From Octopus sinensis (lineage: Eukaryota), in the NCBI RefSeq assembly GCF_006345805.1, contig NC_043001.1, positions 130,014,001-130,078,000 of the forward strand: a stretch of 64,000 bases of DNA. Reading direction: 5' to 3'. The notes beneath the pieces were generated by a model. That model was not told the DNA's origin and made no database searches. It saw nothing but the letters and a program-made list of their open reading frames with translations. Below, piece by piece: positions 5,266 to 41,975 of this stretch (the first letter of the stretch is position 1; every line of letters starts with the position of its first letter). Position numbers and translations under genes: made by a program.

Positions 5266-5313
<48 letters not shown>

Positions 5314-5319
<6 letters not shown>

Positions 5320-5502: not shown

Positions 5503-5589
5503 TTAATAATATTTTACTATAAAATTGGATTTAATCCTAAATCTGATTTTTTCCCTGTAAATTTGGATTTATTCCCTAATATTTATTAT

Positions 5590-5623
<34 letters not shown>

Positions 5624-5854
5624 ATATATATATAATATAATATATACATATATTCCAAATACACATACACACATATATATATATATATATATATACTACA
5701 TACACAAATATACATACATTATGTGTGTATATTTCTGTTTATATTCATATAATTCATTAATATATACATGTATATATACATACAGGCTTATATACATATA
5801 TTAATACATGCAAACATAAACATGTATATATTCAAATATATGAATGTGTGATGT

Positions 5855-5916
<62 letters not shown>

Positions 5917-10260: not shown

Positions 10261-10301
10261 TTTCGCTGAGATATTATTATTATATTATTATTATATTATT
10301 A

Positions 10302-10351
<50 letters not shown>

Positions 10352-10354
10352 TTA

Positions 10355-10575
10355 AGGCGGCATGCTGGCAGAATCATTAGCATGCTGGGTGAAATGCTTA
10401 GTGGTATTTCATCAATCTTTACATTCTGAGTTCAAATTCCGCTGAGGTTGACTTTGCCTTTCGTCCTTTTGGAGGTCGATAAATTAAGTACCAGTTGAGT
10501 ACTGGGGGTTGATATAATCAACTATACCCCTCCACTAAATTTCAGGCCTTGTGCCTTTAGTAGAAAGTATTATTA
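10355..10575 (+). mobile_element. tRNA-derived SINE, family B
   Basis: GCTGGCAGAATCATTAGC...TTCTGAGTTCAAATTCCGC.GAGGT.GACTTTGCCTTTC...TAAATTAAGTACCAG. Other copies at 22110-22325, 55125-55345, 55676-55915 (-) and 61090-61310. Confidence 0.85.
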
Positions 10576-11062
10576 TTATCATTTATCTTGAGATGCTGTC
10601 CTCCCATGTAAGGAGGACAACATAACCCCCATCCCTTCCTTTTTTATTTTATTTTGCTTTATTTTTACTATTGTATACTGTGTATACTTTCCTTATCTAT
10701 CTTGCAGTATACTGTGCATACTTACTATACATTTACATATATGTGTGTGTGTATGTGTGTGTGTGTTATATATATATATATATATATATATAAACACACA
10801 CACATATTCTCTCATTTCATTGAATGTAATGACCCATACTTGGTCTTTGTATTGTCCCTTCATCCTTCGCACTGGTGGAAAATAAATGAAAATATTATTA
10901 TTATTATTATTATTATTATTGTTATTAGTAACTTACCAGCCACATAGTTCTGGGTTCAGTCCCACTGTGTGGCACCTTGGGCAAGTGTCTTCTACTATAG
11001 CCTTGGGCCGACCAAAGCATTGTGAGTGGATTTGGAAGACGGAAGCTGAAAGAAGCCTGTCG

Positions 11063-11095
<33 letters not shown>

Positions 11096-12152
11096 ATGTG
11101 TGTGAGTTTGTGTGTCTGTGTTTGTCCCCCCAACATCACCTGACAACCGATGCTGGTGTGTTTACGTCCCCGTAACCTAGCTGTTTGGCAAAAGAGACCA
11201 ATAGAACAAGTAGTAGGCTTACAAAGAATAAGTCCTGGGGTCGATTTTCTCAACTAAAGGTGATTCTCCAGCATGGCCACAGTCAAATGACTGAAACAAG
11301 TAAAAGAGTAAAAGAGAGTAAAAGAGATTATCATTATTATTATTCAAAATAGTTTGATTTGACTCCATGTGGCGTAAAGTTTCACAGGCTTCTCACAGAA
11401 TGCTAGCTCATTCAGGTTCAGATAACTGGTTATCTAAAGAAGCCTGCTACACATTAAGTTGCATGGAACTAGATCAAACTGTTTTAATTAATAGTATATG
11501 TAATTTCAACTAAATGTATGTAGTGGCTTTTTCTTTTGTTTTTCCATTCCCGTGTGTGAGTGTACATATATACAGTAATACCCCACATTATGAGGACCTG
11601 GTTACAAGACCCTGGGTTTAGAAGTTTTATTTTATAATGAATTTTTCAAGCACAAGATTCAAATTTTGAATGAAGTGCAAAAGTTTCTTCTACCATAACA
11701 AATACTTCTGCATGTAATGGAGAAATTTATATAGTCTAAAAGCTTCTTCTAAGCAAACATCTCTATGCTTGAATTTTAAAAAGAGATGTACAAGTCTGTC
11801 TATGAGTGCTTGTGAATTGGGATCAAGTCTACAAGTGATGGTGTGTGCGAGTATAGTGTGAATGAAAGTGATTCACAAAATGACTATAATAATAATATTT
11901 CTTATTATAAATGATCTTGACATTCTTTTTACTTTACATAAAATATTCTTTACATTCTACTGTTTCTTTATTGCAATTTATTTACGAGTATTATAAATTT
12001 TATAGGTAAAATATTTTTCTGTGAATGAATTATGATTCATAATATTGCTACTATGGGAAATTATTGCTCTGGTTTATGACTTTTCACTTAAAGGTTGGTC
12101 TTTGAGAGCAAATTAACTTGTATATCAAGACATTATTGTATATATATATATA

Positions 12153-21368: not shown

Positions 21369-21760
21369 GAATTGATTTAGAGATCATATTTAAAATACAA
21401 AAAGGTGTTCCTTATGGAATTGGGACATTTCATCTAAAGTTCATCCGATTTGTTAATAATTTTATTTGAACATTTAAAAAGTTTCAATTATTCCTTGCAG
21501 CAGAGGTTACACAATTATCAGTTGCTAAAGTAAGGCTTAGCATGTTTCACAATACTCCAGGTAATATGGAAGACAACATTATTATCCTTTAACTCCCAGA
21601 TTTTTGCAGCAAGTGAAGTAGTTTTAACCTTATTCCTTCCTTAAAGGGTGTGAGTGTTGCTATGTGATCTCAGTTTGAAGAGGAAGGAGGTAGAACCTAG
21701 ACAGGTTGAAGTACTCTGGTTAGTGTAAATCATACATTTGTAAATAATACTTTTAGCTAG
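21369..21760 (-). mobile_element. Penelope-like GIY-YIG endonuclease relic, repeated at ~29167-29560 and ~34781-35175
   Basis: ORF 29316-29531 reads TCIGSTSFPFKLRSHNNTHTFK...TSLAAKIWELKDNNVVFHITWSIVKHAKPY, similar to the PLE endonuclease (YIG.T...FK.R...H..SF; IWELK). Confidence 0.7.
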
Positions 21761-22040
21761 GCCCCTATTATTAAGAGGGCACTAAAATTTATTTCTACAA
21801 TTACATAGTTTTGATGGCAGAGTAGTAGGGCTATTACAAGTACAGGTAATTGGGTTATTATGTTGCAGATAGTTAGCATCACTAGAATTACTAGTGTGGT
21901 TAAGCCTACCAATTCTACAAGCACCATTGAAGAAATATAACTGTTATCATTAGTACAGTTGCTGTAATTGTTATTATTTATATAAGAATCACTGTGGTCA
22001 CTATCAATAGTATTACTATCAGCATTACAAATATGAGCAC

Positions 22041-22097
<57 letters not shown>

Positions 22098-22318
22098 CAT
22101 TATTATTATTATGGTTGTGGTGAGCTGGCAGAATTGTTAACATGCTGGATGAAATGTTTTACAGTATTTCACTTGTTGCTACGTTTTGAGTTCAAATTCT
22201 ACCGAGGTTGGCTTTGCCTTTCACCTTTTCAGGGTTGATAAATTAAGTACCAGTGACACATTGGGATCGATGTAATCAACCCCAGAATTTCAGGGCCTTT
22301 TGCCTTTTAGTAGAAAGG

Positions 22319-22355
<37 letters not shown>

Positions 22356-22899
22356 GTGGTGGTATTGGAGCTAATAAAATGTCATTGTTGTCTTTTGCAT
22401 GAATACTATTGATAATATTGTTACCAGAACATCTTTTTTTTTTATGACTTCCTATGTTATTATTGATAGTCATATATGTGTCAGATTCCAGTGTTGCACT
22501 GATAGCATGACTAGCAGTTGTACTTAGATTATTGCCTGGAATTGACAACAGTTCCATTTACAGTCTCCTTGTGTAGACTACCCAATATCTGAGATGAATA
22601 GGTAGGGTTGGACTTTGTTACACCTATATTAAAGTCAACATTATTATTACTATTATTACAGAAAAAGATACTGTTAATCATGTGTCTGTTGATAGCCATT
22701 ATCTTATTGGTTAGATTTGGTGTTGTGAAATTGAAAGTTTAATTTTATACTAATTATATAATTAGTATAAAATTAAACTTTCAATTTCAGTTTCAATACA
22801 ACTATACTTATTAAGAGGAAAATATTTTTGTGAAATACTAAAAATTTTCTTGGCAAGTTGCATAACAATATAGTAGCCATAATGTCACTACTACTACAT

Positions 22900-23275
22900 C
22901 ATCATCATCATCATGATCATTTAAGGTCTGTTTTCCATGCAGGTGTGGGATGGACATTTTGACCAGGGCTAGCAAGCTATGGGCTGCACCAGGCTCCAGT
23001 CTGATTTGGCATGTTTTCTATGGCTGATTCCCTTCCTAATACCAACCACTCTGAGATTGTAACGGGTGCTTTTACGTGCTACTAGCATGGGTGCCAGTCA
23101 CCTGACACCAGTATCTGCCATGACAATGATTTCCCTTGGCTTGATGGGTCTTCTTCTCAAGCACCGTATATTGCTAAAGGTCTAAGTCATTTGTCATTGC
23201 CCCCATGAAGCCCAGCACTCGAAAGGTGATTTTTACACACCACCTGCACAGGTGCCAGTTATGTGACACCAGCAT
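22900..23275 (-). mobile_element. RTE-tail SINE, reverse, repeated at ~30100-30475 and ~35745-36120
   Basis: (CAT)n then TTTAAGGTCTGTTTTCCATGC...CTTCCTAATACCAACCACTC; reverse complement of the 1200-1425 tail. Confidence 0.7.
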
Positions 23276-23299
23276 AAAACTACCTAAAATACAGAGTAG

Positions 23300-23953
23300 A
23301 TAAAACACCAGAAAGTGATAAATGCAGAATCTGTGGACAAAATGGTGAAACCTTATGCATATTACCAGCCAATATAAGCCATTAGTCTCAGAAGAATATA
23401 AGAGATGCCATGACAATATAGTAAGGCTTGTCCATTGGACACTTTGCAACAAGTATGGACTTGACAGAGAAAAAAATTAGTATGTCCACAATCCCGAAGG
23501 CATCATCGAAAATGATAATGCAAAGATCCTGTGGGATTTTATGATTCAGTGCAACCAAGAGATAGAGAATAGGAAGCCAGACATAAATGCAAACTATGCT
23601 GGATCATAGATATAGCATGCCCAGCTGACAACAAGGTATGCAATAAGGAAGAAAGAAAAGTCAATAGATATGACGGGTTAGCTTGGGAGTTAAAGCAATT
23701 GTGATCAATGAAAAAGCTGGTAGTGGTAACAATAATTGTCGGAGCCCTGGGAACAGCGAGTAAAAACCTTGAAAAGTACATGTAACAAACAGGGGCTGCA
23801 ATAAGGATGGAGCACTTGCAGAAAATATCACTGCTTGGAACTGCTCAAATACTCTGGAAGGTGCTCGAAAAATAAGAGGTGTTACCCTAGTCCACTGGTA
23901 GTGAACAGCTGACACCATAGTACATCTCCAGCTGTGCAAAGGCAATAATAATA

Positions 23954-23994
<41 letters not shown>

Positions 23995-23995
23995 T
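23300..23995 (+). mobile_element. 5'-truncated HERO/R2-group non-LTR relic (zinc knuckle + REL endonuclease) with (AAT)n tail, repeated at ~30500-31215 and ~36150-36860
   Basis: DKCRICGQNGETLMHI...RCHDNIVRLVHW...KILWDF...RKPDI...IDIACP...IIVGALG...LLGTAQILWKVLE; stops and frameshifts present. Confidence 0.85.
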
Positions 23996-26900
23996 GAGCA
24001 ATCAGTAGATAAACATAAATGATAAATAATATTAAATGTAATGATGGGAGAGGTAAAAAGAGTTTTTCTTTCATTTCTGTTTCTGTTGCTATACTTCTCA
24101 GTGACTTGATGTTGTATTTTTTCTTTATCTTTTTCTTGTCCTTTAATAGTCTTGATGTCAGTGGTAGCATCCTTCATAGCCTCGTGTGCCTGCAATACAA
24201 TCACAACTTCCTCCACTTTACACTGCAACAACTCATGAGAGTCTATTAAAGGTAACAGCACAGCCTCTTCAAGGTCCAACAACATACCAGTGATCTTGCC
24301 AGCCTTATCTGGATACATATTATGAATCAGTGGAAAGAGAGTCTCACCAAACTCTTGTTTCTGTTCTTGTGGGGCAATTGCTCCTATCATACTGGAGCTA
24401 AGCAGTTCTTGTCCTTCAGTAGTCTTGATGTCAGTGGTAGCATCTTTCATAGCCTCATGTGCCTGCAATACAATCACAACTTCCTCCACTTTTCCCTGCA
24501 ACAACTCATGAGAGTCTATTAAAGGTAACAGCACAGCCTCTTCAAGCTCCAACAACATACCAGTGATCTTGCCAGCCTTATCTGGATACATATTATGAAT
24601 CAATGGAAAGAGAGTCTCACCAAGCACTTGTTTCTGTTCTTGTGGGGCAATTGCTCCTATCATACTGGAGCTAAGCAGTTTTTGTCCTTTAATATTCTTG
24701 ATGTCAGTGGTAGCATCCGTCATAGCCTCGTGTGCCTGCAATACAATCACAACTTCCTCCACTTTTCCCTGCAACAACTCATGAGAGTCTATTAAAGGTA
24801 ACAGCTCAGCCTCTTCAAGCTCCAACAACATACCAGTGATCTCACCAGCCTTATCTGGATACATATTATGAATCAATGGAAAGAGAGTCTCACCAAGCAC
24901 TTGTTTCTGTTCTTGTGGGTCAATTGCTCCTATCATACTGGAGCTAAGAGGTTGTTGTGCTTCAGTAGTCTTGATGTCAGTGGTAGCATCCTTCATAGCC
25001 TCTTGTGCCTGCAACACAATCACAACTTCCTCCACTTTTCCCTGCAACAACTCATGAGAGTCTTTTAAAGGTAACAGCTCAGCTTCGTCAAGCTCCAACA
25101 ACATACCAGTGATCTCACCAGCCTTATCTGGATACATGTTATGAATCAATGGAAAGAGAGTCTCACCAAGCACTTGTTTCTGTTCTTGTGGGGAATTGCT
25201 CCTATCATACTGGAGCTAAGCAGTTTTTGTCCTTTAATAGTCTTGATGTCAGTGGTAGCATCATTCATAGCCTCATGTGCCTGCAATACAATCACAACTT
25301 CCTCCAACTTTCCCTGCAACAACTCATGAGAGTCTATTAAAGGTAACAGCTCAGCCTCTCAAGCTCCAACAACATACCAGTGATCTTGCAAGCCTTATCT
25401 GGATACATATTATGAATCAATGGAAAGAGAGTCTCACCAAGCACTTGTTTCTGTTCTTGTGGGGCAATTGCTCCAATCATACTGGAGCTAAGCAGTTCTT
25501 GTCCTTCAGTAGTCTTGATGTCAGTGGTAGCATCCTTCATAGCCTCGTGTGCCTGCAATACAATCACAACTTCCTCCACTTTAGCCTGCAACGACTCATG
25601 AGAGTCTAATGAAATTAACAGCTCAGCCTCTTCAAGCTCCAACAACATACCAGTGATCTTGCAAGCCTTATCTGGATACATATTATGAATCAATGGAAAG
25701 AGAGTCTCACCAAGCACTTGTTTCTGTTCTGTGGGGGCAATTGCCCCTATCATACTGGAGCTAAGCAGTTTTTGTCCTTAATATTTTGATGTCAGTGGTA
25801 GCATCCGTCATAGCCTCATGCCTGCAATACAATCACAACTTCCTCCACTTTTCCCTGCAACAACTCATGAGAGTCTATTAAAGGTAACAGCTCAGCCTCT
25901 TCAAGCTCCAACAACATACCAGTGATCTCACCAGCCTTATCTGGATACATATTATGAATCAATGGAAAGAGAGTCTCACCAAGCACTTGTTTCTGTTCTT
26001 GTGGGGCAATTGCTCCTATCATACTGGAGCTAAGCAGTTCTTGTCCTTCAGTAGTCTTGATGTCAGTGGTAGCATATTTCATAGCCTCGTGTGCCTGCAA
26101 TACAATCACAACTTCCTCCACTTTAGCCTGCAACAACTTATGAGAGTCTATTAAAGGTAACAGCTCAGCTTTGTCAAGATCCAGCAACATACCAGTGATC
26201 TTGCCAGCCTTATCTGGATAGATACCATGAACCAATGGAAAGAGAGTCTCACCAAGCACTTGTTTCTGTTCTTGTGGGTCAATTGCTCCTTTCATACTGG
26301 AGCTAAGAGGTTCTTGTCCTTCAGTAGTCTTGATGTCAGTGGTAGCATCCTTCATAGCCTCTTGTGCCTGCAACACAATCACAACTTCCTCCACTTTTCC
26401 CTGCAACAACTCATGAGAGTCTTTTAAAGGTAACAGCTCAGCTTCGTCAAGCTCCAACAACATACCAGTGATCTCACCAGCCTTATCTGGATACATGTTA
26501 TGAATCAATGGAAAGAGAGTCTCACCAAGCACTTGTTTCTGTTCTTGTGGGGCAATTGCTCCTATCATACTGGAGCTAAGCAGTTCTTGTCTATGAATGG
26601 TCTTGATGTCAGTGGTAGCATCCTTCATAGCCTCATGTGCCTGCAATACAATCAAAACTTCCTCCACTTTTCCCTGCAACAACTCATGAGAGTCTATTAA
26701 AGGTAACAGCTCAGCCTCTTCAAGATCCAACAACATACCAGTGATCTTGCGAGCCTTATCTGGATACATATTATGAATCAATGGAAAGAGAGTCTCACCA
26801 AGCACTTGTTTCTGTTCTTGTGGGGCAATTGCTCCTATCATACATGAGCTAAGCAGTTCTTGTCCTTCAGTAGTCTTGATGTCAATGGTAGCATCTTTCA

Positions 26901-27846
26901 TAGCTTCATGTGCCTGCAACACAATCACAACTTCCTCCACTTTTCCCTGCAACAACTCATGAGAGTTTATTAAAGGTAACAGCTCAGCTTCGTCAAGCTC
27001 CAACAACATACCAGTGATCTTGCCAGCCTTATCTGGATAGATACCATGAACCAATGGAAAGAGAGTCTCACCAAGCATTTGTTTCTGTTCTTGTGGGGTA
27101 ATTGCTCCTATCATACTGGAGCTAAGTGGTTCTTGTCCTTTAATAGTCGTGATGTCAGTGGTAGCATGCTTCATAGCCTCATGTGCCTGCAATACAATCA
27201 CAACTTCCTCCATTTTTCCCTGCAACAACTTATGAGAGTCTATTAAAGGTAACAGCTCAGCTTTGTCAAGCTCCAACAACATACCAGTGATCTTGCTAGC
27301 CTTATCTGGATACATACCATGAATCAATGGAAAGAGAGTCTCACCAAGCACTTGTTTCTGTTCTTGTGGGGCAATTGCTCCTATCATACTGGAGCTAAGC
27401 AGTTTTTGTCCTTCAGTAGTCTTGATGTCAGTGGTAGCATTCTTCATAGCCTCATGTGCCTGCAACACAATCACAACTTCCTCCACTTTTCCCTGCAACA
27501 ACTCATGAGAGTCTATTAAAGGTAATAGCTCAGCTTCGTCAAGCTCCAACAACATACCAGTGATCTTGCTAGCCTTATCTGGATACATATTATGAATCAA
27601 TGGAAAGAGAGTCTCACCAAGCTTTTTTTTCTTTTCTTGAAGTGGTACTGCTGTTTTGATACTGGAGGAAAAATTATTGTTTTCATGGATGATCACCACT
27701 GCTTGCTGATTATTAGGTTGATCTAGCATCGACTGCATTGTACCCATAGGTCTGAAAGGTCTTATTGATCCGAATTTAAAGTTAAATCTGGTATTCTCTG
27801 ACTGCATTCTATTCATTTCTCTTGTGGTAAAAGGAGAGAAAGCCAT
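23887..27846 (-). CDS. Tandem-MLLE (PABC) domain protein, copy 1: 13 repeats, small frameshifts at 25190-25820, read-through hydrophobic tail
   Basis: ATG at 27846. Thirteen 273-bp units (YPDKA at ~27580, 27306, 27033, 26760, 26487, 26214, 25941, 25673, 25400, 25129, 24856, 24583, 24310). Unit consensus [78 protein letters not shown], versus PABPC1 [28 protein letters not shown]...[17 protein letters not shown]...KVDEAVAVLQAH (recalled). About 1321 aa if six missing bases are restored. Confidence 0.85.
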
Positions 27847-30800
27847 TGTTTGTCCTCTTTGTGCAGTGATCGGTCAAGAACCATGGTTGATGGAAACTGT
27901 ACAATGAGATCCTGTTTGATTAGCTGGTCTCATCTACTGTGTGAGCAAAGGCTGGTACATAGTGTCCTGCTGGGTTGAGGTTGGCCTAACAGTTGTCCAG
28001 CAATGAGGACCCAAGGCCATAAACTGTATTAGCAGAGAGGAATAGAATACTTTTCTTGAAACTTGGCTGGTATGAAGCAAAGGGTTAGGTTGCTGGCCTG
28101 GAAAATGGTATTGAATTAACTAAGTGGGCTTCTAATAATGTGTGTTCTCTTGAATATATCTCTAGATTATGTGGTATCAAGTAACCTACATGAGGAAATT
28201 TTAAGCAGAACAGTTGTCAGCAACAATCTAGGTGCTACTACCAGTTATCAACACTGCAACAATTGTATCTGACACACATGTTTCATAAGTGAGTCATAAT
28301 AATAGAAGTAGTGATAACAATATTATCAGTAGTATTCAAGCGAATGACCACAATGATAATTCTAGTAGCACCCATACTGACAATAATGATAATAATCATA
28401 TATGCAGGACCAGATTTAACCCTTTCGTTACTATATTTCTGACCAAAATACACCCCTCATGAGCTTCAATTAAATTCTAAAATAATCATGAATCTAGGCT
28501 TGTTTCATTAAATAACAGTAACTTTTTTACTTATCAACATATTAATGTGATATTTGGAACATAATTAAAGAAAGGATTCTTAATCAATTCTATTGCATAA
28601 CTTTTGTCTCAAAGTGACTTTAATTACAGGTAAATCCAGGTAAATTGAGCAAAAGCTAAAAATATTTAAATTTTAAATTGAGCAAATCGTAAAAAATTAA
28701 ATTTTGTTAAAACATCACTATAGAAAATGAATCATCAGCTAATATTCAAATGGGTATGCAACAAAATGTTGATAAAGAAGAATTGTGCATATCACTATAT
28801 CATCAGTTGAATTTAATCCACAACAGGTGTACCATAAAGGTGGAATAAAGTGAAATACTAGAATCCACCGTAAGTTTGACCGAACTAAAGAAATCGGTCA
28901 AAAAAATAATATACGGCCCTGGTTATGGTATGGAAGTGATAAATTCCAGACCACATCGTTCCCTAGGCCATGCTGACTAACATTTTCCCTGTATAAAAAC
29001 TAAATCCACGCAGTACCCAGTAATTTGCTTGACAAATTTTCCGAAATTTGATCCCTGATTTTGTGTTTGTTTACGTTCTGCGTAAGTTTGTTTCCGCATT
29101 GATCGCTTCATTTTGGTCCCACTGTTGTAAAGAACGTTTTTATTATTGTACAGAATCCACTTTACAGAATTGATTTAGAGATCATATTTAAAATACAAAA
29201 AGGTGTTCCTTATGGAATTGGGACATTTCATCTAAAGTTCATCCGATTTGTTAATAATTTTACTTGAACATTTAAAAAGTTTCAATTATTCCATGCAGCA
29301 GAGGTTACACAATTATCAGTTGTTAAAGTAAGGCTTAGCATGTTTCACAATACTCCAGGTAATATGGAAGACAACATTATTATCCTTTAACTCCCAGATT
29401 TTTGCAGCAAGTGAAGTAGTTTTAACCTTATTCCTTCCTTTAAAGGTGTGAGTGTTGTTATGTGATCTCAGTTTGAAGGGGAAGGAGGTAGAACCTATAC
29501 AGGTTAAAGTATTCTGGTTAGTGTAAATCATACATTTGTAAATAATACTTTTAGCTAGGCCCTTATTATTAAGAGGGCACTAAAATTTATTTCTACAATT
29601 ACATAGTTTTGATGGCAGAGTAGTAGGGCTATTACAAGTACAGGTAATTGGGTTATTATGTTGCAGATAGTTAGCATCACTAGAATTACTATTGTTGTTA
29701 AGCCTACCAATTCTACAAGCACCATTGAATAAATATAACTGTTATCATTAGTATAGTTGCTGTAATTGTTATTATTTATATAAGAATCACTGTGGTCACT
29801 ATCAATAGTATTACCATCAGCATTACAAATATGAGCACTATTATTATTATTATTATTATTATTATCATTATTATTATTATTATTAGTGGTATTGGAGCTA
29901 ATAAAATGTCATTGTTGTCTTTTGCATGAATACTATTGATAATATTGTTACCAGTACATCAGTATAATTAGTATAAAATTAAACTTTCAATTTTAGTTTC
30001 AATACAACTATACTTATTAAGAGGAAAATATTTTTGTGAAATACTAAAAATTTTCTTGGCAAGTTGCATAACAATATAGTAGTCATAATGTTACTACTAC
30101 ATCATCATCATCATCATCATTTAAGGTCTGTTTTCCATGCAGGTGTGGGATGGACATTTTGACCAGGGCTAGCAAGCTATGGGCTGCACCAGGCTCCAGT
30201 CTGATTTGGCATGTTTTCTATGGCTGATTCCCTTCCTAATACCAACCACTCTGAGATTGTAACGGGTGCTTTTACGTGCTACTAGCATGGGTGCCAGTCA
30301 CCTGACACCAGTATCTGCCATGACAATGATTTCCCTTGGCTTGATGGGTCTTCTTCTCAAGCACCGTATATTGCTAAAGGTCTCAGTCATTTGTCATTGC
30401 CCCCATGAAGCCCAGCACTCGAAAGGTGATTTTTACACACCACCTGCACAGGTGCCAGTTATGTGACACCAGCATAAAACTACCTAAAATACAGAGTAGA
30501 TAAAACTCCAGAAAGTGATAAGTGCAGAATCTGTGGACAAAATGGTGAAACCTTATGCATATTACCAGCCAATATAAGCCATTAGTCTCAGAAGAATATA
30601 AGAGATGCCATGACAATATAGTAAGGCTTGTCCATTGGACACTTTGCAACAAGTATGGACTTGACAGAGAAAAAAATTAGTATGTCCATAATCCCGAAGG
30701 CATCATCGAAAATGATAATGCAAAGATCCTGTGGGATTTTATGATTCAGTGCAACCAAGAGATAGAGAATAGGAAGCCAGACATAAAAGCAAACTATGCT

Positions 30801-31390
30801 GGATCATAGATATAGCATGCCCAGCTGACAACAAGGTATGCAATAAGGAAGAAAGAAAAGTCAATAGATATGACGGGTTAGCTTGGGAGTTAAAGCAATT
30901 GTGATCAATGAAAAAGCTGGTAGTGGTAACAATAAATGTCGGAGCCCTGGGAACAGCGAGTAAAAACCTTGAAAAGTACATGGAACAAATAGGGGCTGCA
31001 ATAAGGATGGAGCACTTGTAGAAAATAGCACTGCTTGGAACCGCTCAAATACTCTAAAAGGTGCTCGAAAAATAAGAGGTGTTACCCTAGTCCACTGGTA
31101 GTGAACAGCTGACACCATAGTACATCTCCAGCATTAAAAGCTGTGCAAAGGCAATAATAATAAATAATAATAATAATAATAAATAATAATAATAACAATA
31201 ACAATAATAATGATAATAGTAACAATGAGAAATCAGTAGATAAACATAAATGATAAATAATATTAAATGTAATGATGGGAGAGGTAAAAAGAGTTTTTGT
31301 TTCGTTTCTTTTTCTGTTGCTATACTTCTCTGTGACTTGATGTGGTATTTTTTCTTTATCTTTTTCTTGATTTATTCTCTTCAGTCTTTC

Positions 31391-33462
31391 TTAATGACCC
31401 CTAGCCTTGATGGTAGCAGCTTCCTGAACCCGATATTCCCGCAATACAACCATAGCTTCTTCGACTTTAGCCTGCAACAACTCATGAGAGTCTATCAAAG
31501 GTAACAGCTCAGCTTTGTCAAGCTCCAACAACATACCTGTGATCTTGCCAGCCACGTATGGATAGATAGCATGAACCAATGGTAAAAGAGTCTCACCAAG
31601 CATTTGTTTCTGTACTTGTGGTGGTACTGCTGCTAACATACTGGAGCTAAGCATTTCTTGTCTATGATTGGTCTTGATGTCAGTGGTAGCATTTTTCTTA
31701 GCCTCATGTGCCTGCAACACAATCACAGCTTCCTCCACTTTAGCCTGCAGCGACTCATGAGAGTCTAATGAAATTAACAGCTCAGCCTCTTCAAGCTCCA
31801 ACAACATACCAGTGATCTTGCCAGCCTTATCTGGATACATGTTATAAATCAATGAAAAGAGAATCTCACCAAGCACTTGTTTCTGTTCTTGTGGGTCAAT
31901 TGCTCCTATCATACTGGAGCTAAGAGCTTCTTGTCCTTCAGTAGTCTTGATGTCAGTGGTAGCATCCTTCATAGCCTCTTGTGCCTGCAACACAATCACA
32001 ACTTCCTCCACTTTTCCCTGCAACAACTCATGAGAGTCTTTTAAAGGTAACAGCTCAGCTTCGTCAAGCTCCAACAACATACCAGTGATCTCACCAGCCT
32101 TATCTGGATACATGTTATGAATCAATGGAAAGAGAGTCTCACCAAGCACTTGTTTCTGTTCTTGTGGGGCAATTGCTCCTATCATACTGGAGCTAAGAGG
32201 TTCTTGTCCTTCAGTAGTCTTGATGTCAGTGGTAGCATCCTTCATAGCCTCTTGTGCCTGCAATACAATCACAACTTCCTCCACTTTCCCTGCAACAACT
32301 CATGAGAGTCTATTAAAGGTAATAGCTCAGCCTCTTCAAGCTCCAACAACATACCAGTGATCTTGCCAGCCTTATCTGGATACATATTATGAATCAATGG
32401 AAAGAGAATCTTACTAAGCACTTGTTTCTGTTCTTGTGGGTCACTTGCTCCTATCATACTGGAGCTAAGAGGTTCTTGTCCTTCAGTAGTCTTGATGTCA
32501 GTGGTAGCATTCTTCATAGCCTCTTGTGCCTGCAATACAATCACAACTTCCTCCACTTTTCCCTGCAACAACTCATGAGAGTCTATGAAAGGTAATAGCT
32601 CAGCTTCGTCAAGCTCCAACAACATACCAGTGATCTTGCCAGCCTTATCTGGATAGATACCATGAACCAATGGAAAGAGAGTCTCACCAAGCACTTGTTT
32701 CTGTACTTGTGGGGCAATTGCTCCTATCATACTGGAGCTAAGAGGTTCTTGTCTATGAATAGTCTTGATGTCAGTGGTAGCATCCTTCATAGCCTCATGT
32801 GCCTGCAACACAATCACAACTTCCTCCACCTTTCCCTGCAACAACTTATGAGAGTCTATTAAAGGTAACAGCTCAGCTTCGTCAAGCTCCAACAACATAC
32901 CAGTGATCTTGCCAGCCTTATCTGGATACATATTATGAATCAATGGAAAGAGAGTCTCACCAAGCATTTGTTTCTGTTCTTGTGGGTCAATTGCTCCTAT
33001 CATACTGGAGCTAAGAGGTTCTTTTCCTTTAATAGTCTTGATGTCAGTGATAGCATCTTTCATAGCCTCGTGCGCCTGCAACACATTCACAGCTTCCTCG
33101 GCTTTAGCCTGCAACAACTCATGAGAGTCTATTAAAGGTAACAGCTCAGACGTGTCAAGCTCCAACAACATACCAGTGATCTTGCCAGCCTTATCTGGAT
33201 ACATACCATGAACCAATGGAAAGAGAGTCTCACCAAGCTTTTTTTTCTTTTCTTGAAGTGGTACTGCTGTTCTGATAGTGGAGGAAAAATTATTGTTTTC
33301 ATGGATGATCACCACTGCTTGCTGATTATTAGGTTGATCTAGCATCGACTGCATTGTACCCATAGGTCTGAAAGGTCTTATTGGTCCGAATTTAAAGTTA
33401 AATCTGGTATTCTCTGACTGCATTTTATTCATTTCTCTTGTGGTAAAAGGAGAGAAAGCCAT
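31391..33462 (-). CDS. Tandem-MLLE domain protein, copy 2: 7 repeats, 690 aa if one base is restored
   Basis: ATG at 33462, TAA at 31391-31393. The only defect is one missing T in a T4 run at ~32285 (CCACTTTCCC versus CCACTTTTCCC in the other units). Terminal unit reads [39 protein letters not shown]...[17 protein letters not shown]. Confidence 0.88.
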
Positions 33463-36400
33463 TGTTTGTCCTCTTTGTGCAGTGATGGGTCAAGAACCAT
33501 GGTTGATGGAAACTGTACAATGAGATCCTTTTTAATTAGCTGGTCTCATCTACTGTGTGAGCAAAGGCTGGTACATAGTATCCTGCTGGGTTGAGGTTGG
33601 CCTAAAAGTTGTTCAGCAATGAGGCCCCAAGGCCCGAAACTGTATTAGCAGAGAGGATTAGAATACTTTTCTTGAAACTTGGCTGGTATGAAGCAAAGGG
33701 TTAGGTTGCTGGCCTGGAAAATGGTATTGAATTAACTAAGTGGGCTTCTAATAATGTGTGTTCTCTTGAATATATCTCTAGATTATGTGGTATCAAGTAA
33801 CCTACATGAGGAAATTTTAAGCAGAACAGTTGTCAGCAACAATCTAGGTGCTACTACCAGTTATCAACACTGCAACAATGGTATCTGACACAATGTTTCA
33901 TAAGTGAGTCATAATAATAGAAGTAGTGATAACAATATTATCAGTAGTATTCAAGCGAATGACCACAATGATAATTCTAGTAGCACCCATACTGACAATA
34001 ATGATAATAATCATATATGCAGGACCAGATTTAACCCTTTCGTTACTATATTTCTGACCAAAATACACCCCTCATGAGTTTCAATTAAATTCTAAAATAA
34101 TCATGAATCTAGGCTTGTTTCATTAAATAACAGTAACTTTTTTACTTATCAACATATTAATGTGATATTTGGAACATAATTAAAGAAAGGATTCTTAATC
34201 AATTCTATTGCATAACTTTTGTCTCAAAGTGATTTTAATTACAGGTAAATCCAGGTAAATTGAGCAAAAGCTAAAAATATTAAAATTTTAAATTGAGCAA
34301 ATCGTAAAAAATTAAAATTTTGTTTAAACATCACCATAGAAAATGAATCATCAGCTAATATTCAAATGGGTATGCAACAAAATGTTGATAAAGAAGAATT
34401 GTGCATATCACTATATCATCAGTTGAATTTAATCCACAACAGGTGTACCATAAAGGTGGAATAAAGTGAAATACTAGAATCCACCGTAAGTTTGACCGAA
34501 CTAAAGAAATCGGTCAAAAAAATAATATACGGCCCTGGTTATGGTATGGAAGTAATAAATTCCAGACCACATCGTTCCCTAGGCCATGCTGACTAACATT
34601 TTCCCTGTATAAAAACTAAATCCATGCAGTACCCAGTAATTTGCTTGACAAATTTTCCGAAATTTGATCCCTGATTTTCTGTTTGTTTACGTTCTGCGTA
34701 AGTTTGTTTCTGCATTGATCGCTTCATTTTGGTCCCACTGTTGTAAAGAACGTTTTTATTATTGTACAGAATCCACTTTACAGAATTGATTTAGAGATCA
34801 TATTTAAAATACAAAAAGGTGTTCCTTATGGAATTGGGACATTTCATCTAAAGTTCATCCGATTTGTTAATAATTTTACTTGAACATTTAAAAAGTTTCA
34901 ATTATTCCATGCAGCAGAGGTTACACAATTATCAGTTGTTAAAGTAAGGCTTAGCATGTTTCACAATACTCCAGGTAATATGGAAGACAACATTATTATC
35001 CTTTAACTCCCAGATTTTTGCAGCAAGTGAAGTAGTTTTAACCTTATTCCTTCCTTTAAAGGTGTGAGTGTTGTTAGTAGTGATCTCAGTTTGAAGGGGA
35101 GGAGGTAGAACCTATACAGGTTAAAGTATTCTGGTTAGTGTAAATCATACATTTGTAAATAATACTTTTAGCTAGGCCCTTATTATTAAGAGGGCACTAA
35201 AATTTATTTCTACAATACATAGTTTTGATGGCAGAGTAGTAGGGCTATTACAAGTACAGGTAATTGGGTTATTATGTTGCAGATAGTTAGCATCACTAGA
35301 ATTACTATTGTTGTTAAGCCTACCAATTCTACAAGCACCATTGAATAAATATAACTGTTATCATTAGTATAGTTGCTGTAATTGTTATTATTTATATAAG
35401 AATCACTGTGGTCACTATCAATAGTATTACCATCAGCATTACAAATATGAGAACTATTATTATTATTATTATTATTATCATTATTATCATTATTATTATT
35501 ATTATTATTATCATTATTATTATTATTATTAGTGGTATTGGAGCTAATAAAATGTCATTGTTGTCTTTTGCATGAATACTATTGATAATATTGTTACCAG
35601 TACATCAGTATAATTAGTATAAAATTAAACTTTCAATTTCAGGTTCAATACAACTATACTTATGAAGAGGAAAATATTTTTGTGAAATACTAAAATTTTC
35701 TTGGCAAGTTGCATAACAAAATTGTAGCCATCATGTTACTACTACTACATCATCATCATCATCATTTAAGGTCTGTTTTCCATGCAGGTGTGGGATGGAC
35801 ATTTTGACCAGGGCTAGCAAGCTGATGGGCTGCACCAGGCTCCAGTCTGATTTGGCATGTTTTCTATGGCTGATTCCCTTCCTAATACCAACCACTCTGA
35901 GATTGTAACGGGTGCTTTTACGTGCAACTGACATGGGTGCCAGTCACCTGATACCAGTATCTGCCATGACAATGATTTCCCTTTGCTTGATGGGTCTTCT
36001 TCTCAAGCACCGTATATTGCTAAAGGTCTCAGTCATTTGTCATTGCCCCCATGAAGCCCAGCACTCGAAAGGTGCTTTTTACACACCACCTGCACAGGTG
36101 CCAGTTATGTGACACAGCATATAAAACTACCTAAAATACAGAGAGTAAAAAACTCAGAAAGTGATAAGTGCAGAATCTGTGGACAAAATGGTGAAACCTT
36201 ATGCATATTACCAGCCAATATAAGCCATTAGTCTCAGAAGAATATAAGAGATGCCATGACAATATAGTAAGGCTTGTCCATTGGACACTTTGCAACAAGT
36301 ATGGACTTGACAGAGAAAAAAATTAGTATGTCCACAATCCCGAAGGCATCATCGAAAATGATAATGCAAAGATCCTGTGGGATTTTATGATTCAGTGCAA

Positions 36401-37032
36401 CCAAGAGATAGAGAATAGGAAGCCAGACATAAAAGCAAACTATGCTGGATCATAGATATAGCATGCCTAGCTGACAACAAGATATGCAATAAGGAAGAAA
36501 GAAAAGTCAATAGATATGACGGGTTAGCTTGGGAGTTAAAGCAATTGTGATCAATGAAAAAGCTGGTAGTGGTAACAATAATTGTCGGAGCCCTGGGAAC
36601 AGCGAGTAAAAACCTTGAAAAGTACATGGAACAAATAGGGGCTGCAATAAGGGTGGACCACTTTCAGAAAACAGCACTGCTTGGAACCGCTCATATACTC
36701 TGGCAGGTGCTCGAAAAATAAGAGGTGTCACCCTAGTCCACTGGTAGTGAACAGCTGACACCATAGTACATCTCCAGCATTAAGAGCTGTGCAAAGGCAA
36801 TAATAATAAATAATAATAATAATAATAATAATAACAACAATAACAATAATAATGATAAAAGTAACAATGAGCAATCAGTAGATAAACATAAATGATAAAT
36901 AATATTAAATGTAATGATGGGAGAGGTAAAAAGAGTTTTTGTTTCATTTCTTTTTCTGTTGCTATACTTCTCTGTGACTTGATGTTGTATTTTTTCTTTA
37001 TCTTTTTCTTGATTTGTTCTCTTCAGTCTTTC

Positions 37033-38285
37033 TTAATGACCCCTAGCTTTGATGGTAGCAGCTTCTTGACCCCGATATTCCCACAATACAATCATAGCTT
37101 CCTCGACTTTAGCCTGCAACAACTCATGAGAGTCTATCAAAGGTAACAGCTCAGCTTTGTCAAGCTCCAACAACATACCTGTGATCTTGCCAGCCACGTA
37201 TGGATATAGATAGCATGAACCAATGGTAAAAGAGTCTCACCAAGCATTTGTTTCTGTACTTGTGGTGGTACTGCTGCTAACATACTGGAGCTAAGCAGTT
37301 CTGCTATGATTGGTCTTGATGTCAGTGGTAGCATTTTCTTAGCCTCATGTGCCTGCAACACAATCACAGCTTCCTCCACTTTAGCCTGCAGCGACTCATG
37401 AGAGTCTAATGAAATTAACAGCTCAGCCTCTTCAAGCTCCAACAACATACCAGTGATCTTGCCAGCCTTATCTGGATACATGTTATAAATCAATGAAAAG
37501 AGAATCTCACCAAGCACTTGTTTCTGTTCTTGTGGGTCAATTGTTCCTATTGTACTGGAACTAAGAGGTTCTTTTCCTTTAATAGTCTTGATGTCAGTGA
37601 TAGCATCTTTCATAGCCTCTTGTGCCTGCAATACAATCACAACTTCCTCCACTTTTCCCTGCAACAACTTATGAGAGTCTATTAAAGGTAACAGCTCAGC
37701 TTCGTCAAGCTCCAACAACATACCAGTGATCTCGCCAGCCTTATCTGGATACATGTTATGAATCAATGGAAAGAGAGTCTCACCAAGCACTTGTTTCTGT
37801 TCATGTGGGTCAATTGCTCCTATCATACTGGAGCTAAGAGGTTCTTTTCCTTTAATAGTCTTGATGTCAGTGATAGCATCTTTCATAGCCTCTTGTGCCT
37901 GCAACACAATCACAACTTCCTCCACTTTTCCCTGCAACAACTCATGAGAGTCTATTAAAGGTAATAGCTCAGCTTCGTCAAGCTCCAACAACATACCAGT
38001 GATCTTGCCAGCCTTATCTGGATACATACCATGAACCAATGGAAAGAGAGTCTCACCAAGCTTTTTTTTCTTTCCTTGAAGTGGTACTGCTGTTCTGATA
38101 GTGGAGGAAAAATTATTGTTTTCATGGATGATCACCACTGCTTGCTGATTATTAGGTTGATCTAGCATCGACTGCATTGTACCCATAGGTCTGAAAGGTC
38201 TTATTGGTGCGAATTTAAAGTTAAATCTGGTATTCTCTGACTGCATTTTATTCATTTCTCTTGTGGTAAAAGGAGAGAAAGCCAT
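37033..38285 (-). CDS. Tandem-MLLE domain protein, copy 3: 4 repeats, 417 aa if indels are corrected
   Basis: ATG at 38285, TAA at 37033-37035. Indels at ~37335 (-1), ~37300 (-2) and ~37205 (+2). The corrected length is exactly 3x91 aa shorter than copy 2. Confidence 0.8.
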
Positions 38286-39831
38286 TGTTTGTCCTCTTTA
38301 TGCAGTGATGGGTCAAGAACCATGGTTGATGGAAACTGTACAATGAGATCCTGTTTAATTAGCTGGTCTCATCTACTGTGTGAGCAAAGGCTGGTACATA
38401 CTTATCAACATATTAATGTGATATTTGGAACATAATTAAAGAAAGGGTTCTTAATCAATTCTATTGCATAACTTTTGTCTCAAAGTGACTTTAATTACAG
38501 GTAAATCCAGGTAAATTGAGCAAAAGGTAAAAATATTAAAATTTTTAATTGAGCAAAAGTTAAAAAATTAAAATTTTGTTAAAACATCACTATAGAAAAT
38601 GAATCATCAGCTAATATTCAAATGGGTATGCAACAAAATTTGATAAAGAAGAATTGTGCACATCACTATATCATCAGTTGAATTTAATCCACAACAGGTG
38701 TACCATAAAGGTGGAATAAAGTGAAATACTAGAATCCACCGTAAGTTTGACCGAACTAAAGAAATCGGTCAAAAAAATAATATACGGCCCTGGTTATGGT
38801 ATGGAAGTAATAAATTCCAGACCACATCGTTCCCTAGGCCATGCTGACTAACATTTTCCCTGTATAAAAACTAAATCCACGCAGTACCCAGTAATTTGCT
38901 TGATAAATTTCCCAAACTTTGAACCCCGATTTTGTGTTTGTTTACGTTCTGCGTAAGTTTGTTTCCGCATTGATCGCTTCAAACAATAACTTCCAGACCA
39001 CATCATACCCTAAGCCATGATGACTAACATTAGTTTCCCTGTATAAAAACTAAATCCACAACAGTACCCAGGATTTGCTTCACAAATTTTCCAAACTTTG
39101 AACCCCGATTTTGGGTTTGTTTACAATCTGCGTAAATTTGTTTCGGAAGTGATCGCTTCAAGCTAGCATACTGAAGAAAATAAAAGTCTAATGATTTCAC
39201 TTCCTAACAAAGGCTGTAGATAAACTTTATCTCCTCAGAAAAATTACTAATAAAAACATTTAAAAAGTTTTTTTACTCCATTCCGATGTAAAATCGTCTT
39301 CGCTGTCGCCTTCGCCACTTTGTTTCTTCGGAAGGCGCGGCTTTCATTTTCGGATGAAAAAATATTCATTATTTTGTACACCACGTTCTTTAGTACCTAT
39401 TTCATTCTTTTTCTCGATATCTCCCTATTTTCCGTTGAAAAAGCTTTAAATTCGGAATCAATGCTTGATAACATGAAACTCCTATCCATTTACAAAGGTG
39501 AAGAAAAATCGATGCCGAAAAACATGTGGAAAAAAAAGTTGAGATATAACTTCAAGCAATGTCGGATACTATAACTTAACTATTTACAATGTGAAATCAC
39601 ATGTTTTAACGAATGTACCAACGAGATTTGGGTTCAAATTACATTTAAACAACAATAGGTTCTCACGGCCGGGTACGGCCGGCTTGGTATTATGAACCAA
39701 AAAGTTTTACGGCCGGCTACGCCCGGGTTAGTAACGAAAGGGTAACAGTGGTGAAGATGGTTGGGGTACTTCAAGTTTGGTGGGCCCCTCATACAGAAGA
39801 ATTAAAGTCATGGAAAATTACCGAATTTAAA

Positions 39832-41910: not shown

Positions 41911-41974
<64 letters not shown>

Positions 41975-41975
<1 letters not shown>

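Follow-up and report, generated by a model that had tools for sequence, protein, structure and literature searches.

Tandem MLLE-domain genes of Octopus derived from the 3′ end of a PABPC gene

Introduction

Three neighbouring loci of Octopus sinensis, called here A, B and C, carry a short leader followed by long arrays of the MLLE domain. We consider it probable that they are real tandem paralogues of a family belonging to the Octopus lineage, that their proteins are made, and that these proteins are multivalent PAM2 binders. In PABPC, the MLLE domain is the hub that connects eRF3 (termination), PAN3 and TOB (deadenylation), GW182 (miRNA silencing), PAIP, LARP4 and ataxin-2 to the poly(A) tail, and the PAM2 partners compete for one MLLE site per PABPC. 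In a cell expressing 4–13 MLLE sites without RNA binding, this competition would be sharply altered.

Gene architecture

The window, that is, the whole 64,000-nucleotide stretch of DNA that was analysed, lies on chromosome scaffold C5 of O. sinensis, and the three paralogues are found at positions 23887–38285. Their common build is a leader derived from the PABPC linker, followed by 13 (A), 7 (B) or 4 (C) units of 273 bp (91 aa). The features are the following.

23887..27846, minus strand: paralogue A; start codon at 27846, unique leader of 57 aa, 13 units at 27675–24133
25816–27846 (676 aa, 7 MLLE), 25337–25777, a short piece, and 23887–25215, minus strand: open reading frames of locus A
31391..33462, minus strand: paralogue B; leader and 7 units with a conserved terminal unit, stop codon 31393–31391
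37033..38285, minus strand: paralogue C; leader and 4 units, the last with its own stop codon at 37035–37033
37137–38285, minus strand: plain open reading frame of paralogue C (382 aa)
27847..28154, minus strand: non-coding PABPC-linker remnant upstream of the start of A, homologous to residues 383–445 of the 630-aa parental PABPC
33463–33770: equivalent linker remnant upstream of B
38286–38402: equivalent linker remnant upstream of C, shortened
21369..38981, no strand assigned: triplicated segmental repeat (gene plus ca 3.5-kb spacer)

The unit counts, which had been proposed in a sequence-only reading of the window, were obtained in two ways that agree with each other. Minus-strand arrays with a period of 273 bp were found at 24133–27639 (12.9 copies), 31441–33255 (6.7) and 37084–38061 (3.6), and tblastn with one unit returns 13, 7 and 4 unit positions. 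The 273-bp period also bears out the unit length of 91 aa given in that reading, but the units are neither all exact nor all in one frame in the O. sinensis assembly. The leader is found three times, at 38285 (C), 33462 (B) and 27846 (A), and instead of the estimated ca 70 aa it measures 75 aa up to the first LGE, with a unique part of 57 aa. The mean column identity among the 18 in-frame units is 87%, which far exceeds chance. No other multi-MLLE locus was found in the 2.72-Gb O. sinensis genome.

The spacers 27874–31390 and 33490–37032 are 97% identical to each other, and the blocks 21369–22087, 22757–24138 and 38399–38981 have 96–98% identity to them. The surroundings of the loci are rich in transposable elements.

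Domain identity and docking surface

All five long open reading frames match the Pfam MLLE family PF00658 (E = 6.5e-156, 2.5e-90, 3.1e-74, 1.6e-70 and 1.8e-87), with scores of 233–507 bits against a cut-off of 27 and 3–7 matched stretches per frame, while no Pfam RRM family matches any of the five. Together with the comparison to PABPC, this confirms the description of the loci as RRM-less MLLE arrays with contiguous coding sequence. A single unit matches the human PABPC1 MLLE at E = 2.5e-23, with 57–60% amino acid identity over the octopus units. In the AlphaFold model, four helical beads (pLDDT 70–86) are joined by linkers which, like the leader, have pLDDT below 50 (pTM 0.27), and Foldseek places the fold at a target TM of 0.92–0.94 and 0.8 Å rmsd to 3KTR, 3PKN and 3KUS. 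As judged from Pfam, the match to solved structures and the predicted fold, the unit is a genuine MLLE domain. The (K/E)ITGMLL(E/D) signature, earlier noted in every unit, is indeed present at the DNA level in 24/24, in the last unit of C in a shifted frame only.

The residues of MLLE that contact PAM2 are Q560, G563, E564, F567, G579, K580, T582, M584–I588, K606, E609, A610, V613, L614 and H617 (PMC2854688). Seven of these 18 (M584, L585, L586, K606, E609, V613 and L614) are invariant in the 41 octopus units compared, and the others are mostly conserved. The variants at contact positions are K580E (9/41 units), G563S+E564K (5/41), T582I (4/41) and H617Q/Y (21/41). In about half of the units all contacts are canonical, and the terminal unit resembles PABPC. 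The PAM2-docking surface thus appears, from these alignments, to be largely kept.

Origin of the arrays

From the sequence comparisons, the founder is a 5′-truncated copy of an intronless PABPC4-like gene on scaffold C23 (P0016), spanning from ca codon 383, just after RRM4, to ca 270 nt of the 3′UTR. Homology to PABPC begins at ca residue 383; a tblastn search with full-length PABPC gave no match before this residue, and no RRM-homologous sequence was found further upstream of the linker remnants. Compared with the parental gene (L001), the stretch from the upstream region through the leader to the first unit has 75% nucleotide identity, and the terminal unit together with the 3′UTR has 73%. 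Elsewhere in the O. sinensis genome, the C23 gene is the sole homologue of the leader. In the tree, all octopus units form one clade that is sister to octopus PABPC (support 100/96), as expected from the lineage specificity proposed earlier. The parental gene has a 643-codon open frame and is itself intronless, so retroposition and DNA duplication of the founder are indistinguishable.

The start codon of the octopus copies sits within the former PABPC linker. The amplified 273-bp segment consists of the linker end, the MLLE domain and the C-terminal tail, repeated head-to-tail; in each array the first unit is diverged and the last one conserved and PABPC-like. The block of gene and spacer was triplicated before the split of O. 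sinensis and O. vulgaris.

Orthologues in other octopuses

The orthologous cluster of O. vulgaris, in an independent and likewise error-prone ONT assembly, contains three fully open genes of 417, 690 and ca 1135 aa with 4, 7 and 12 units. The orthologue of A (L004 18002–21466) is a single open frame of 1154 codons, that of B (9683–11782) has 699 codons, and that of C (4858–6138) has 426 codons and is 99.2% identical to C. The order and the spacers match those of O. sinensis, with unit counts of 4/7/12 versus 4/7/13. Homologues with leader and units were also found in O. bimaculoides (P0004, P0125 and P0268).

The suggestion that copy number varies is supported here: locus A has 13 units in O. 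sinensis and 12 in its sister species, and units have been swapped between arrays. O. sinensis B has a mosaic structure, its 3′ half being closest to the O. vulgaris orthologue of A (fifth unit of B identical, 100%, to the tenth unit there; seventh versus twelfth, 99.6%). Unit gain, unit loss and exchange between arrays are still ongoing.

It is very improbable that the arrays or their sizes are merely a mis-assembled repeat: the mosaic B, the missing terminal unit of A and the frameshifts described below would fit such an artefact, but the same three-gene cluster, with its order, spacers and nearly the same counts, is present in the independent O. vulgaris assembly, homologues exist in a third species, and an artefact could reach no further than details of the copy in O. 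sinensis.

Coding potential and selection

Seven indels of 1–2 bp disrupt all three reading frames of the O. sinensis assembly. In locus A, one 2-bp and two 1-bp deletions (ca 25818, 25357 and 25195) leave frames of 676, 146, ca 40 and 442 aa; the terminal PABPC-like unit is absent, and the last frame continues into 3′UTR-homologous sequence. Locus B is interrupted once, by the loss of 1 bp from an A-run at 32283, which leaves frames of 397 aa and 302 aa. In locus C, −1 (37337) and −2 (37303) indels offset each other, and a +2 insertion of TA (37208) puts the last unit out of frame. The earlier observation that no unit contains a nonsense codon is therefore correct once the frames are mended, but not in the frames as assembled. 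Six of the seven indels are deletions, and several lie within short homopolymer or dinucleotide runs. They more likely stem from errors in the consensus of a noisy long-read assembly, here of a tandem repeat, than from genuine lesions.

We have also considered that the arrays are decaying and non-functional, that is, that a truncated PABPC copy was amplified in a satellite-like manner, that its youth mimics coding sequence, and that at least the O. sinensis loci are pseudogenes. Several observations are in line with this. Frames are broken at all three loci. The coding sequence of C and B has 4 indels in 3.35 kb, a density similar in magnitude to the 10 in 3.5 kb counted for the orthologous spacer. 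Recent units have a nearly neutral dN/dS of 0.94 overall and 0.77 for internal units, with a range of 0.8–1.3 over the estimates, and in tree-event counts the value for the unit core does not fall significantly below 1 (binomial P = 0.35). No leader-bearing contig was found among the read-set assemblies, a collection in which canonical PABPC mRNA is present, and no consistent AATAAA was found downstream of the three stop codons. The neighbourhood rich in transposable elements and the loss of the terminal unit from A point in the same direction.

Decay is nevertheless unlikely in view of the other species and the deeper comparisons. The O. vulgaris genes are all open over ca 2270 codons, and since sequencing errors break frames and do not mend them, these open frames weigh against decay. 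The 23 O. vulgaris units have no stops, where 3–5 would be expected (3.4–4.9; P = 0.007–0.03), and no indels, where the ratio of indels to substitutions in the adjacent spacers predicts ca 20. The family is old, at dS of 0.6–0.85 from the parental PABPC, yet the core omega against this parent is only ca 0.17 (0.38 for the terminal unit versus the internal consensus), the hydrophobic and the invariant PAM2-contact positions have been held, and the family is retained in O. bimaculoides. Replacements are also significantly fewer in the core than in the linkers (Fisher P = 0.0097). Frameshifts in all copies together with dN/dS near 1, which the sequence-only reading had named as counting against it, come close to describing O. 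sinensis, but not the open O. vulgaris frames. Function is argued for only by the intact orthologues of O. vulgaris and by the deeper comparison, that to the parental gene.

Proposed function

On the preferred reading, namely that the three loci are genuine genes, the product would begin with a disordered leader and continue with 4, 7 or 12–13 independent MLLE helical bundles on flexible linkers of ca 15 residues. We infer that the proteins are made. With the docking surface kept and poly(A) binding absent, they would be multivalent binders of eRF3, PAIP1/2, PAN3, TOB, ataxin-2, LARP4 and GW182. Two options can be envisaged: the PAM2 partners would be drawn off PABPC, a decoy function as proposed for Arabidopsis MPC, or they would be clustered, a scaffold function. 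A PAM2-sponge or scaffold role is plausible; in the sequence-only reading this conjecture extends to condensates and miRNA silencing.

A different possibility, which we regard as quite improbable, is that the proteins are functional but not PAM2 sponges, being instead a diversified docking platform with drifted ligands, as in Rrm4, or an adaptor for an unrelated process, with positive selection on linkers and pocket. The selective driver could be conflict with a PAM2-mimicking virus or in reproductive tissue. The charge-reversing or pocket-filling variants K580E, G563S+E564K and T582I recur at contact residues, and the linkers have an omega of ca 2.1–2.4, a significant replacement excess (binomial P = 0.006) which rests, however, on parsimony counts within a recombining array. 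Viral PAM2 mimicry is documented, and the fold matches include 7BN3, a structure of MLLE in complex with a coronavirus N protein. In Rrm4, moreover, only one of three MLLEs binds PAM2-like motifs (PMC9249222). Against this stand the canonical contacts of about half of the units and the PABPC-like terminal unit.

Comparison with known proteins

The closest relative is the parental gene itself (PABPC1/PABPC4 type): its linker, MLLE and 3′UTR gave rise to the leader, to all units and to the 3′ flank of the octopus genes, in which KITGMLLE and the majority of PAM2 contacts are preserved. While PABPC has four N-terminal RRMs and a single C-terminal MLLE after a proline-rich linker, the octopus genes have no RRM, so that poly(A) binding would not be expected, and 4, 7 or 12–13 MLLEs. 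They differ further in the new start codon within the linker and in a much faster evolution, above all of the linkers.

A decoy of this kind has already been proposed in print for a single-domain protein, and the idea is in this sense not new. Arabidopsis MPC (maternally expressed PAB C-terminal; Tiwari et al. 2008) is described in PMC4122942 as an RRM-less protein with one MLLE that aligns to the PABP 3′ end only, evolves at an accelerated rate and originates from a whole-genome duplicate. It is proposed there to bind PAM2 (CID) proteins and thereby block their contact with full PABP, and its expression and phenotype are shown (PMC4122942). The octopus genes are likewise RRM-less PABP duplicates aligning to the 3′ end only, but MPC is a plant protein with a single MLLE, whereas the octopus genes have 4–13 and are known here from their sequences.

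Ustilago maydis Rrm4, with three MLLEs and three RRMs, has been called the first multi-MLLE protein (Devan et al. 2022, PMC9249222). Its MLLEs are old, with 17–32% identity, and form a fixed hierarchy in which only MLLE3 binds PAM2-like motifs and MLLE1 and MLLE2 do not bind PAM2 (PMC9249222). According to the bead model, the octopus proteins would share with Rrm4 several flexibly joined MLLEs in one chain; their arrays are in contrast young (87% mean identity), without RRMs and of independent origin from octopus PABPC. Outside PABP, an MLLE to which PAM2 proteins are recruited is also present in UBR5/EDD, but as one domain in a 2800-aa HECT ligase and with lower similarity to the octopus unit (E ca 1e-9 to 1e-11).

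The sequence-only reading knew of no described protein built of long MLLE arrays. No paper describes one, but the architecture is not unique in databases, and the octopus genes are already annotated. RRM-less or rewired multi-MLLE proteins are found in gastropods (Babylonia areolata XP_076446257 with 6–7 domains, Plakobranchus with 3, Haliotis with 2–3), cnidarians (RING plus 3–4 MLLE in Montipora and Acropora, and a divergent family with 4–5 MLLE), echinoderms (Anneissia with 3, Apostichopus with 2) and the plant Kingdonia (4 MLLE plus F-box). They have at most seven domains, are often fused to RING, F-box, MIF4G or PHAX, and have no published characterisation. Several have near-identical units within the protein, which indicates recent amplification of a PABPC 3′ end, and in the tree the units group by lineage, which indicates independent origins.

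A tentative and somewhat doubtful generalisation is that RRM-less multi-MLLE proteins constitute a class of regulators invented repeatedly in marine invertebrates, each from its own PABPC 3′ end, with octopus as the extreme case of a tunable sponge or condensate scaffold with graded PAM2 specificities. The class may then include octopus, whelk, sea slug, abalone, corals and echinoderms. The octopus proteins would in that case offer 12–13 docking sites per chain, at a copy number still shifting between sister species, and the pocket variants K580E, G563S/E564K and T582I would give one protein graded PAM2 specificities. The octopus family would set the amount of eRF3, deadenylase and GW182 activity that reaches poly(A) tails. 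Similar architectures arising independently in several phyla suggest a general, overlooked solution, and the octopus proteins, if made, would be a natural copy-number-graded tool on the stoichiometry of MLLE to PAM2 partners and on mRNA fate.

Existing annotation

The genes are annotated as 'polyadenylate-binding 4-like' in O. vulgaris and 'PABC domain-containing' in O. bimaculoides. For O. sinensis, NCBI gives LOC115212275 with three isoforms, which splice from locus C into B via splice-site mimics inside the repeat. These isoforms may be mapping artefacts and not evidence of expression. The case illustrates how repeat-borne splice-site mimics and long-read indels can lead to the fusion of two paralogues into one gene model.

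Arrays and Their Origin

The cluster of multi-MLLE genes proposed in the sequence-only reading is real. The window corresponds to positions 130014001-130078000 of O. sinensis scaffold C5. Tandem Repeats Finder places three arrays with a period of 273 bp in the RRM-less paralogues called here locus A (23887-27846), locus B (31391-33462) and locus C (37033-38285), as follows:

24133-27639, minus strand: array A, 12.9 copies, 92% matches
31441-33255, minus strand: array B, 6.7 copies
37084-38061, minus strand: array C, 3.6 copies

Translation of the minus strand yields 91-aa units, from which a 91-residue consensus was derived, and the same leader stands ahead of all three arrays (at 27846, 33462 and 38285). 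Pfam identifies MLLE (PF00658) in the ORFs with E values from 6.5e-156 to 1.6e-70 and 3–7 matched stretches per ORF; RRM families give no match in the array ORFs of the window. One unit searched against the human PABPC1 MLLE chains gives E = 2.5e-23. Besides this cluster, no multi-MLLE locus was found in the whole O. sinensis genome (2,719,151,902 bases in 13,516 scaffolds), and an Rfam scan of the window returned no match.

Judged from sequence homology, the origin of the arrays can be considered solved, the source being the PABPC4-like gene on scaffold C23 that encodes protein P0016. Homology to the linker of P0016, starting from residue ~383 directly after RRM4, covers the leader and the 300 nt that precede it; no RRM-like sequence is present farther upstream of the leaders. 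Nucleotide identity to the parental gene is 75% across the first unit, the leader and the region before it, and 73% across the terminal unit and its flank, where the match takes in ~270 nt of the parental 3'UTR. When the leader was searched against the genome, the only matches were the three loci and C23. The parental gene is itself intronless (630 aa within a 643-codon open frame, G000:C23:14772000-14776500, L001), and retroposition and partial duplication at the DNA level are therefore indistinguishable as the founding event. From the divergence values, the following order of events was inferred:

Founder copy split from the parent: dS 0.6-0.85
Terminal and internal units separated: dS ~0.3
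Divergence among internal units: dS ~0.09
Locus triplicated: 2-4% divergence between spacers
Split of O. sinensis and O. vulgaris: spacer ~1% diverged

A value of 16% between the spacers below A and below B, obtained in a global MAFFT alignment, was rejected as a rearrangement artefact, the BLAST blocks being 96-98% identical.

The genome also contains a second intronless PABP-like open frame (661 codons, 51% identical, G000:C9:95980500-95985000, L002), and the sole exon-like MLLE match in O. sinensis is on C3. With intronless frames on C23 and C9 and this lone exon-like match, it is possible that the octopus relies on retrogene-type PABPCs.

The Orthologous Cluster in O. vulgaris

The O. vulgaris cluster (OX597818.1, region L004) was reached via the annotated proteins P0001 and P0003. 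It consists of three genes, C', B' and A', with order and spacers matching those of O. sinensis:

L004 4858-6138: C', stop-to-stop frame of 426 codons, 4 units
L004 9683-11782: B', stop-to-stop frame of 699 codons, 7 units
L004 18002-21466: A', stop-to-stop frame of 1154 codons, 12 units

All three are open throughout, from the stop codon 5' of the leader to the terminal ...ATIKARGH and its stop, each unit is exactly 273 bp, and locus C and C' are 99.2% identical. The O. vulgaris assembly was produced from ONT R9.4.1 reads with Illumina/10x polishing (PMC10700109). Since it is thus also ONT-based, and since errors break frames and do not mend them, the open frames are not an artefact of cleaner data. 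In a scan for poly(A) signals, AATAAA was found 17 nt past the stop codon in O. sinensis B and O. vulgaris A' only.

Gain and loss of units and their exchange between arrays are ongoing after the split of the two species. Array A comprises 13 units in O. sinensis vs 12 in O. vulgaris, and A' carries a higher-order duplication of 4 units. Units are also common to different arrays, as O. sinensis B5 and O. vulgaris A'10 are 100% identical, and the terminal unit of O. sinensis B is closer to its counterpart in A' (99.6% identity) than to the one in B' (96.9%).

Broken Frames in the O. sinensis Assembly

The sequence-only reading described intronless genes made of exact units without a nonsense codon. 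The units and domains are indeed present, but in the O. sinensis assembly the reading frame of each of the three loci is interrupted:

Locus A: 2-bp deletion at ~25818 (gcaggca^tgagg) and 1-bp deletions at ~25357 and ~25195; ORFs of 676, 146, ~40 and 442 aa
Locus B: 1-bp deletion at 32283; ORFs of 397 and 302 aa
Locus C: -1 (37337), -2 (37303) and +2 (37208); plain ORF of 382 aa

Locus A is also without a terminal unit, its last internal unit directly abutting what in loci B and C is the 3'UTR. Relative to O. vulgaris, the lesions are 1–2-bp length changes, six of the seven being deletions, and several are within A-runs or CA/TA repeats. With 4 indels in the 3.35 kb that are coding in loci C and B and 10 in 3.5 kb of orthologous spacer, the two densities are of the same order, as would fit uniform assembly error or neutral decay. 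Overall, we consider assembly error likelier than true lesions. The three plain ORFs of the window have no exact match in a collection of 15 billion proteins.

NCBI lists a single gene in this region (LOC115212275), its three isoforms having 508, 488 and 417 aa. Mapped back, these are spliced chimeras that run from locus C to the last C unit, on to locus B and then to the last B unit, and by joining paralogue C to B they sidestep the frameshifts. The junctions (37449/37181, 37104/32836 and 32446/31630) are GT..AG and are provided by the repeat itself, which contains strong splice-site mimics at ITG/M (ACTG/GTATGT) and LLQ/G (TTGTTGCAG/G), the slash marking the junction. The isoforms may thus reflect either real repeat-to-repeat splicing or mapping artefacts induced by the repeat.

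Selection

Pairwise dN/dS values (Nei–Gojobori) among the 23 O. vulgaris units are 0.94 overall, 0.77 for internal and 0.39 for terminal units. A dN/dS near 1 with real frameshifts in all copies had been named beforehand as speaking against function, and the among-unit values, taken alone, do come close to it. On the tree, 120 nonsynonymous and 33 synonymous changes were counted. These are distributed as 48N/22S in the folded core (LGE...VLQ, 54 codons; omega ~0.8) and 72N/11S in the linkers (omega ~2.4), a significant difference (Fisher P = 0.0097).

The O. vulgaris units contain 0 stop codons vs 3.4-4.9 expected (P = 0.007-0.03). Two apparent stops in the count of distinct variants turned out to be parts of multi-nucleotide codon changes, with no unit carrying a real stop. 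Likewise, these units are free of indels over 6.2 kb, where ~20 are predicted from the adjoining duplicated spacers (11 indels per 65 substitutions). Along the long branch that separates the units from the parent gene, omega is ~0.17 for the core and 0.5-0.9 for the linkers, and between the terminal unit and the internal consensus it is 0.38 for the core. If the array lineage had been neutral since its birth, a combined omega near 0.5 would be expected. The lack of stops, the lack of indels and the core omega of ~0.17 on the branch to the parent argue for constraint. Function as a protein is probable in O. vulgaris and uncertain for the O. sinensis assembly of the window.

Structure, PAM2 Site and Possible Action

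In AlphaFold (single-sequence mode), the 417-aa O. vulgaris C' protein is modelled as a disordered leader (residues 1-60, pLDDT <50) followed by four helical modules (pLDDT 70-86) with low-confidence linkers between them (pTM 0.27). The modules superimpose onto PABPC1 MLLE–PAM2 complex structures with a target TM of 0.92-0.94 and an rmsd of ~0.8 Å.

The PAM2-contact residues listed by Kozlov and Gehring (PMC2854688) were scored in 41 units from both species, unit position n corresponding to human residue 543+n. M584, L585, L586, K606, E609, V613 and L614 do not vary, and all 41 units have Leu in place of I588. The contact set is fully canonical in about half of the units; the variants are listed below.

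Variants at PAM2-contact positions in the 41 units
K580E: 9/41
G563S + E564K: 5/41, O. vulgaris only
T582I: 4/41
F567L: the 4 terminal units
H617Q/Y: 21/41
G579 to R/S/C: 5/41

The anatomy is that of a string of independent putative PAM2-docking modules without the RNA-binding half of PABPC. If expressed, an array protein would compete with PABPC for PAM2 partners or collect several of them per chain, which is a plausible mechanism. There is published precedent for both ideas. For the competitor, it is Arabidopsis MPC, described as 'a pure PAB C-terminus' that came from a PAB8 duplicate; MPC has evolved at an accelerated rate and is proposed to keep PAM2 (CID) proteins off full PABP (PMC4122942). 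For the multi-MLLE platform, it is fungal Rrm4, in which several MLLEs form a flexible platform (PMC9249222).

As a transcript proxy, the Logan read-set assemblies were searched for leader-bearing short proteins, giving 2 O. bimaculoides-type entries and 0 Logan contigs. Since tandem repeats fragment such assemblies, this result is uninformative rather than negative. The octopus loci are unmentioned in any paper found in the literature search.

Other Multi-MLLE Proteins

With a profile built from the window units, a search of 1.84 billion representative proteins retrieved 4077 MLLE proteins, many of them with several such domains. The proteins listed below were checked by Pfam and cluster records.

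Multi-MLLE proteins outside the octopus cluster
Babylonia areolata XP_076446257: 1573 aa, 6-7 MLLE, without RRM
Montipora, Acropora (P0008, P0010, P0011, P0021): RING + 3-4 tandem MLLE
Kingdonia uniflora (P0127), a basal eudicot: 4 MLLE + F-box + beta-propeller
One protein: PHAX + 4 MLLE
Plakobranchus, 3 MLLE; Haliotis, 2-3; Anneissia, 3; Apostichopus, 2
Mytilus: MIF4G + 3 RRM + 3 MLLE
Divergent cnidarian-type family, P0129 cluster (11 members, ~436 aa), P0023, P0031, P0089 (Desmophyllum pertusum): 4-5 MLLE

The coral RING and Kingdonia F-box arrays combine ubiquitin-ligase-type modules with MLLE, like UBR5 yet independently assembled. P0196, with 13 matched stretches a seeming rival, is a false positive, as Pfam assigns these to TTI1 TPR repeats.

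In a tree of 67 MLLE units, the octopus array units all fall into a single clade (100/98) whose sister is octopus PABPC (100/96), and the remaining arrays cluster with their own lineages, which indicates that the architecture arose many times independently. The P0129-type proteins, whose MLLEs are mutually divergent and accompanied by no other domain, form a separate old clade (100/99) and appear, unlike the young arrays, to be a conserved cnidarian-type family. The largest MLLE count is that of the octopus family, 12-13, compared to at most 7 elsewhere. None of the tabulated proteins was found in the searchable literature, and Devan et al. (2022) knew of no multi-MLLE protein before Rrm4 (PMC9249222). 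What is already known comprises the MLLE domain, the idea of a decoy and the platform of several MLLEs; not described are an RRM-less tandem array this extreme, its recent origin and turnover, and the recurrence across phyla.

Surroundings of the Cluster

Around the cluster, transposable elements seem abundant and genes scarce. Immediately upstream, the plus strand carries a weak PHD-finger-like ORF (42391-43029) as well as a fragment of a reverse transcriptase (41973-42539; RVT_1, E = 7.9e-25). In O. vulgaris, the spacer between B' and A' contains an intact LINE-type ORF of 932 codons (L004 13263-16061) with endonuclease and reverse transcriptase (Pfam Exo_endo_phos_2, RVT_1), located at the (AAT)n/(TAT)n microsatellite of the spacer. 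The insertion is not present in the corresponding O. sinensis spacer (27874-31390); it must therefore postdate the species split and be young, and the retroelement is possibly active. Such a microsatellite is found in each spacer (29555-29908 and 35210-35554 in the window, 7624-8001 in L004) and gives rise to an open frame of 114-125 codons that encodes poly-Asn.

Upstream of each paralogue there is a 33-bp tandem duplication (28641-28705, 34256-34321 and 38514-38577). Locus C has in addition a 179-bp repeat in two copies upstream (38809-39161), and ~650 nt of its upstream spacer are deleted compared to A and B, including most of the PABPC-linker remnant. Finally, positions 62001-64000 have an extreme strand bias (GC 0.50, GC skew -0.76, AT skew +0.30) and overlapping plus-strand open frames of 150-344 codons with no Pfam match; this stretch is probably a C/A-rich simple repeat.
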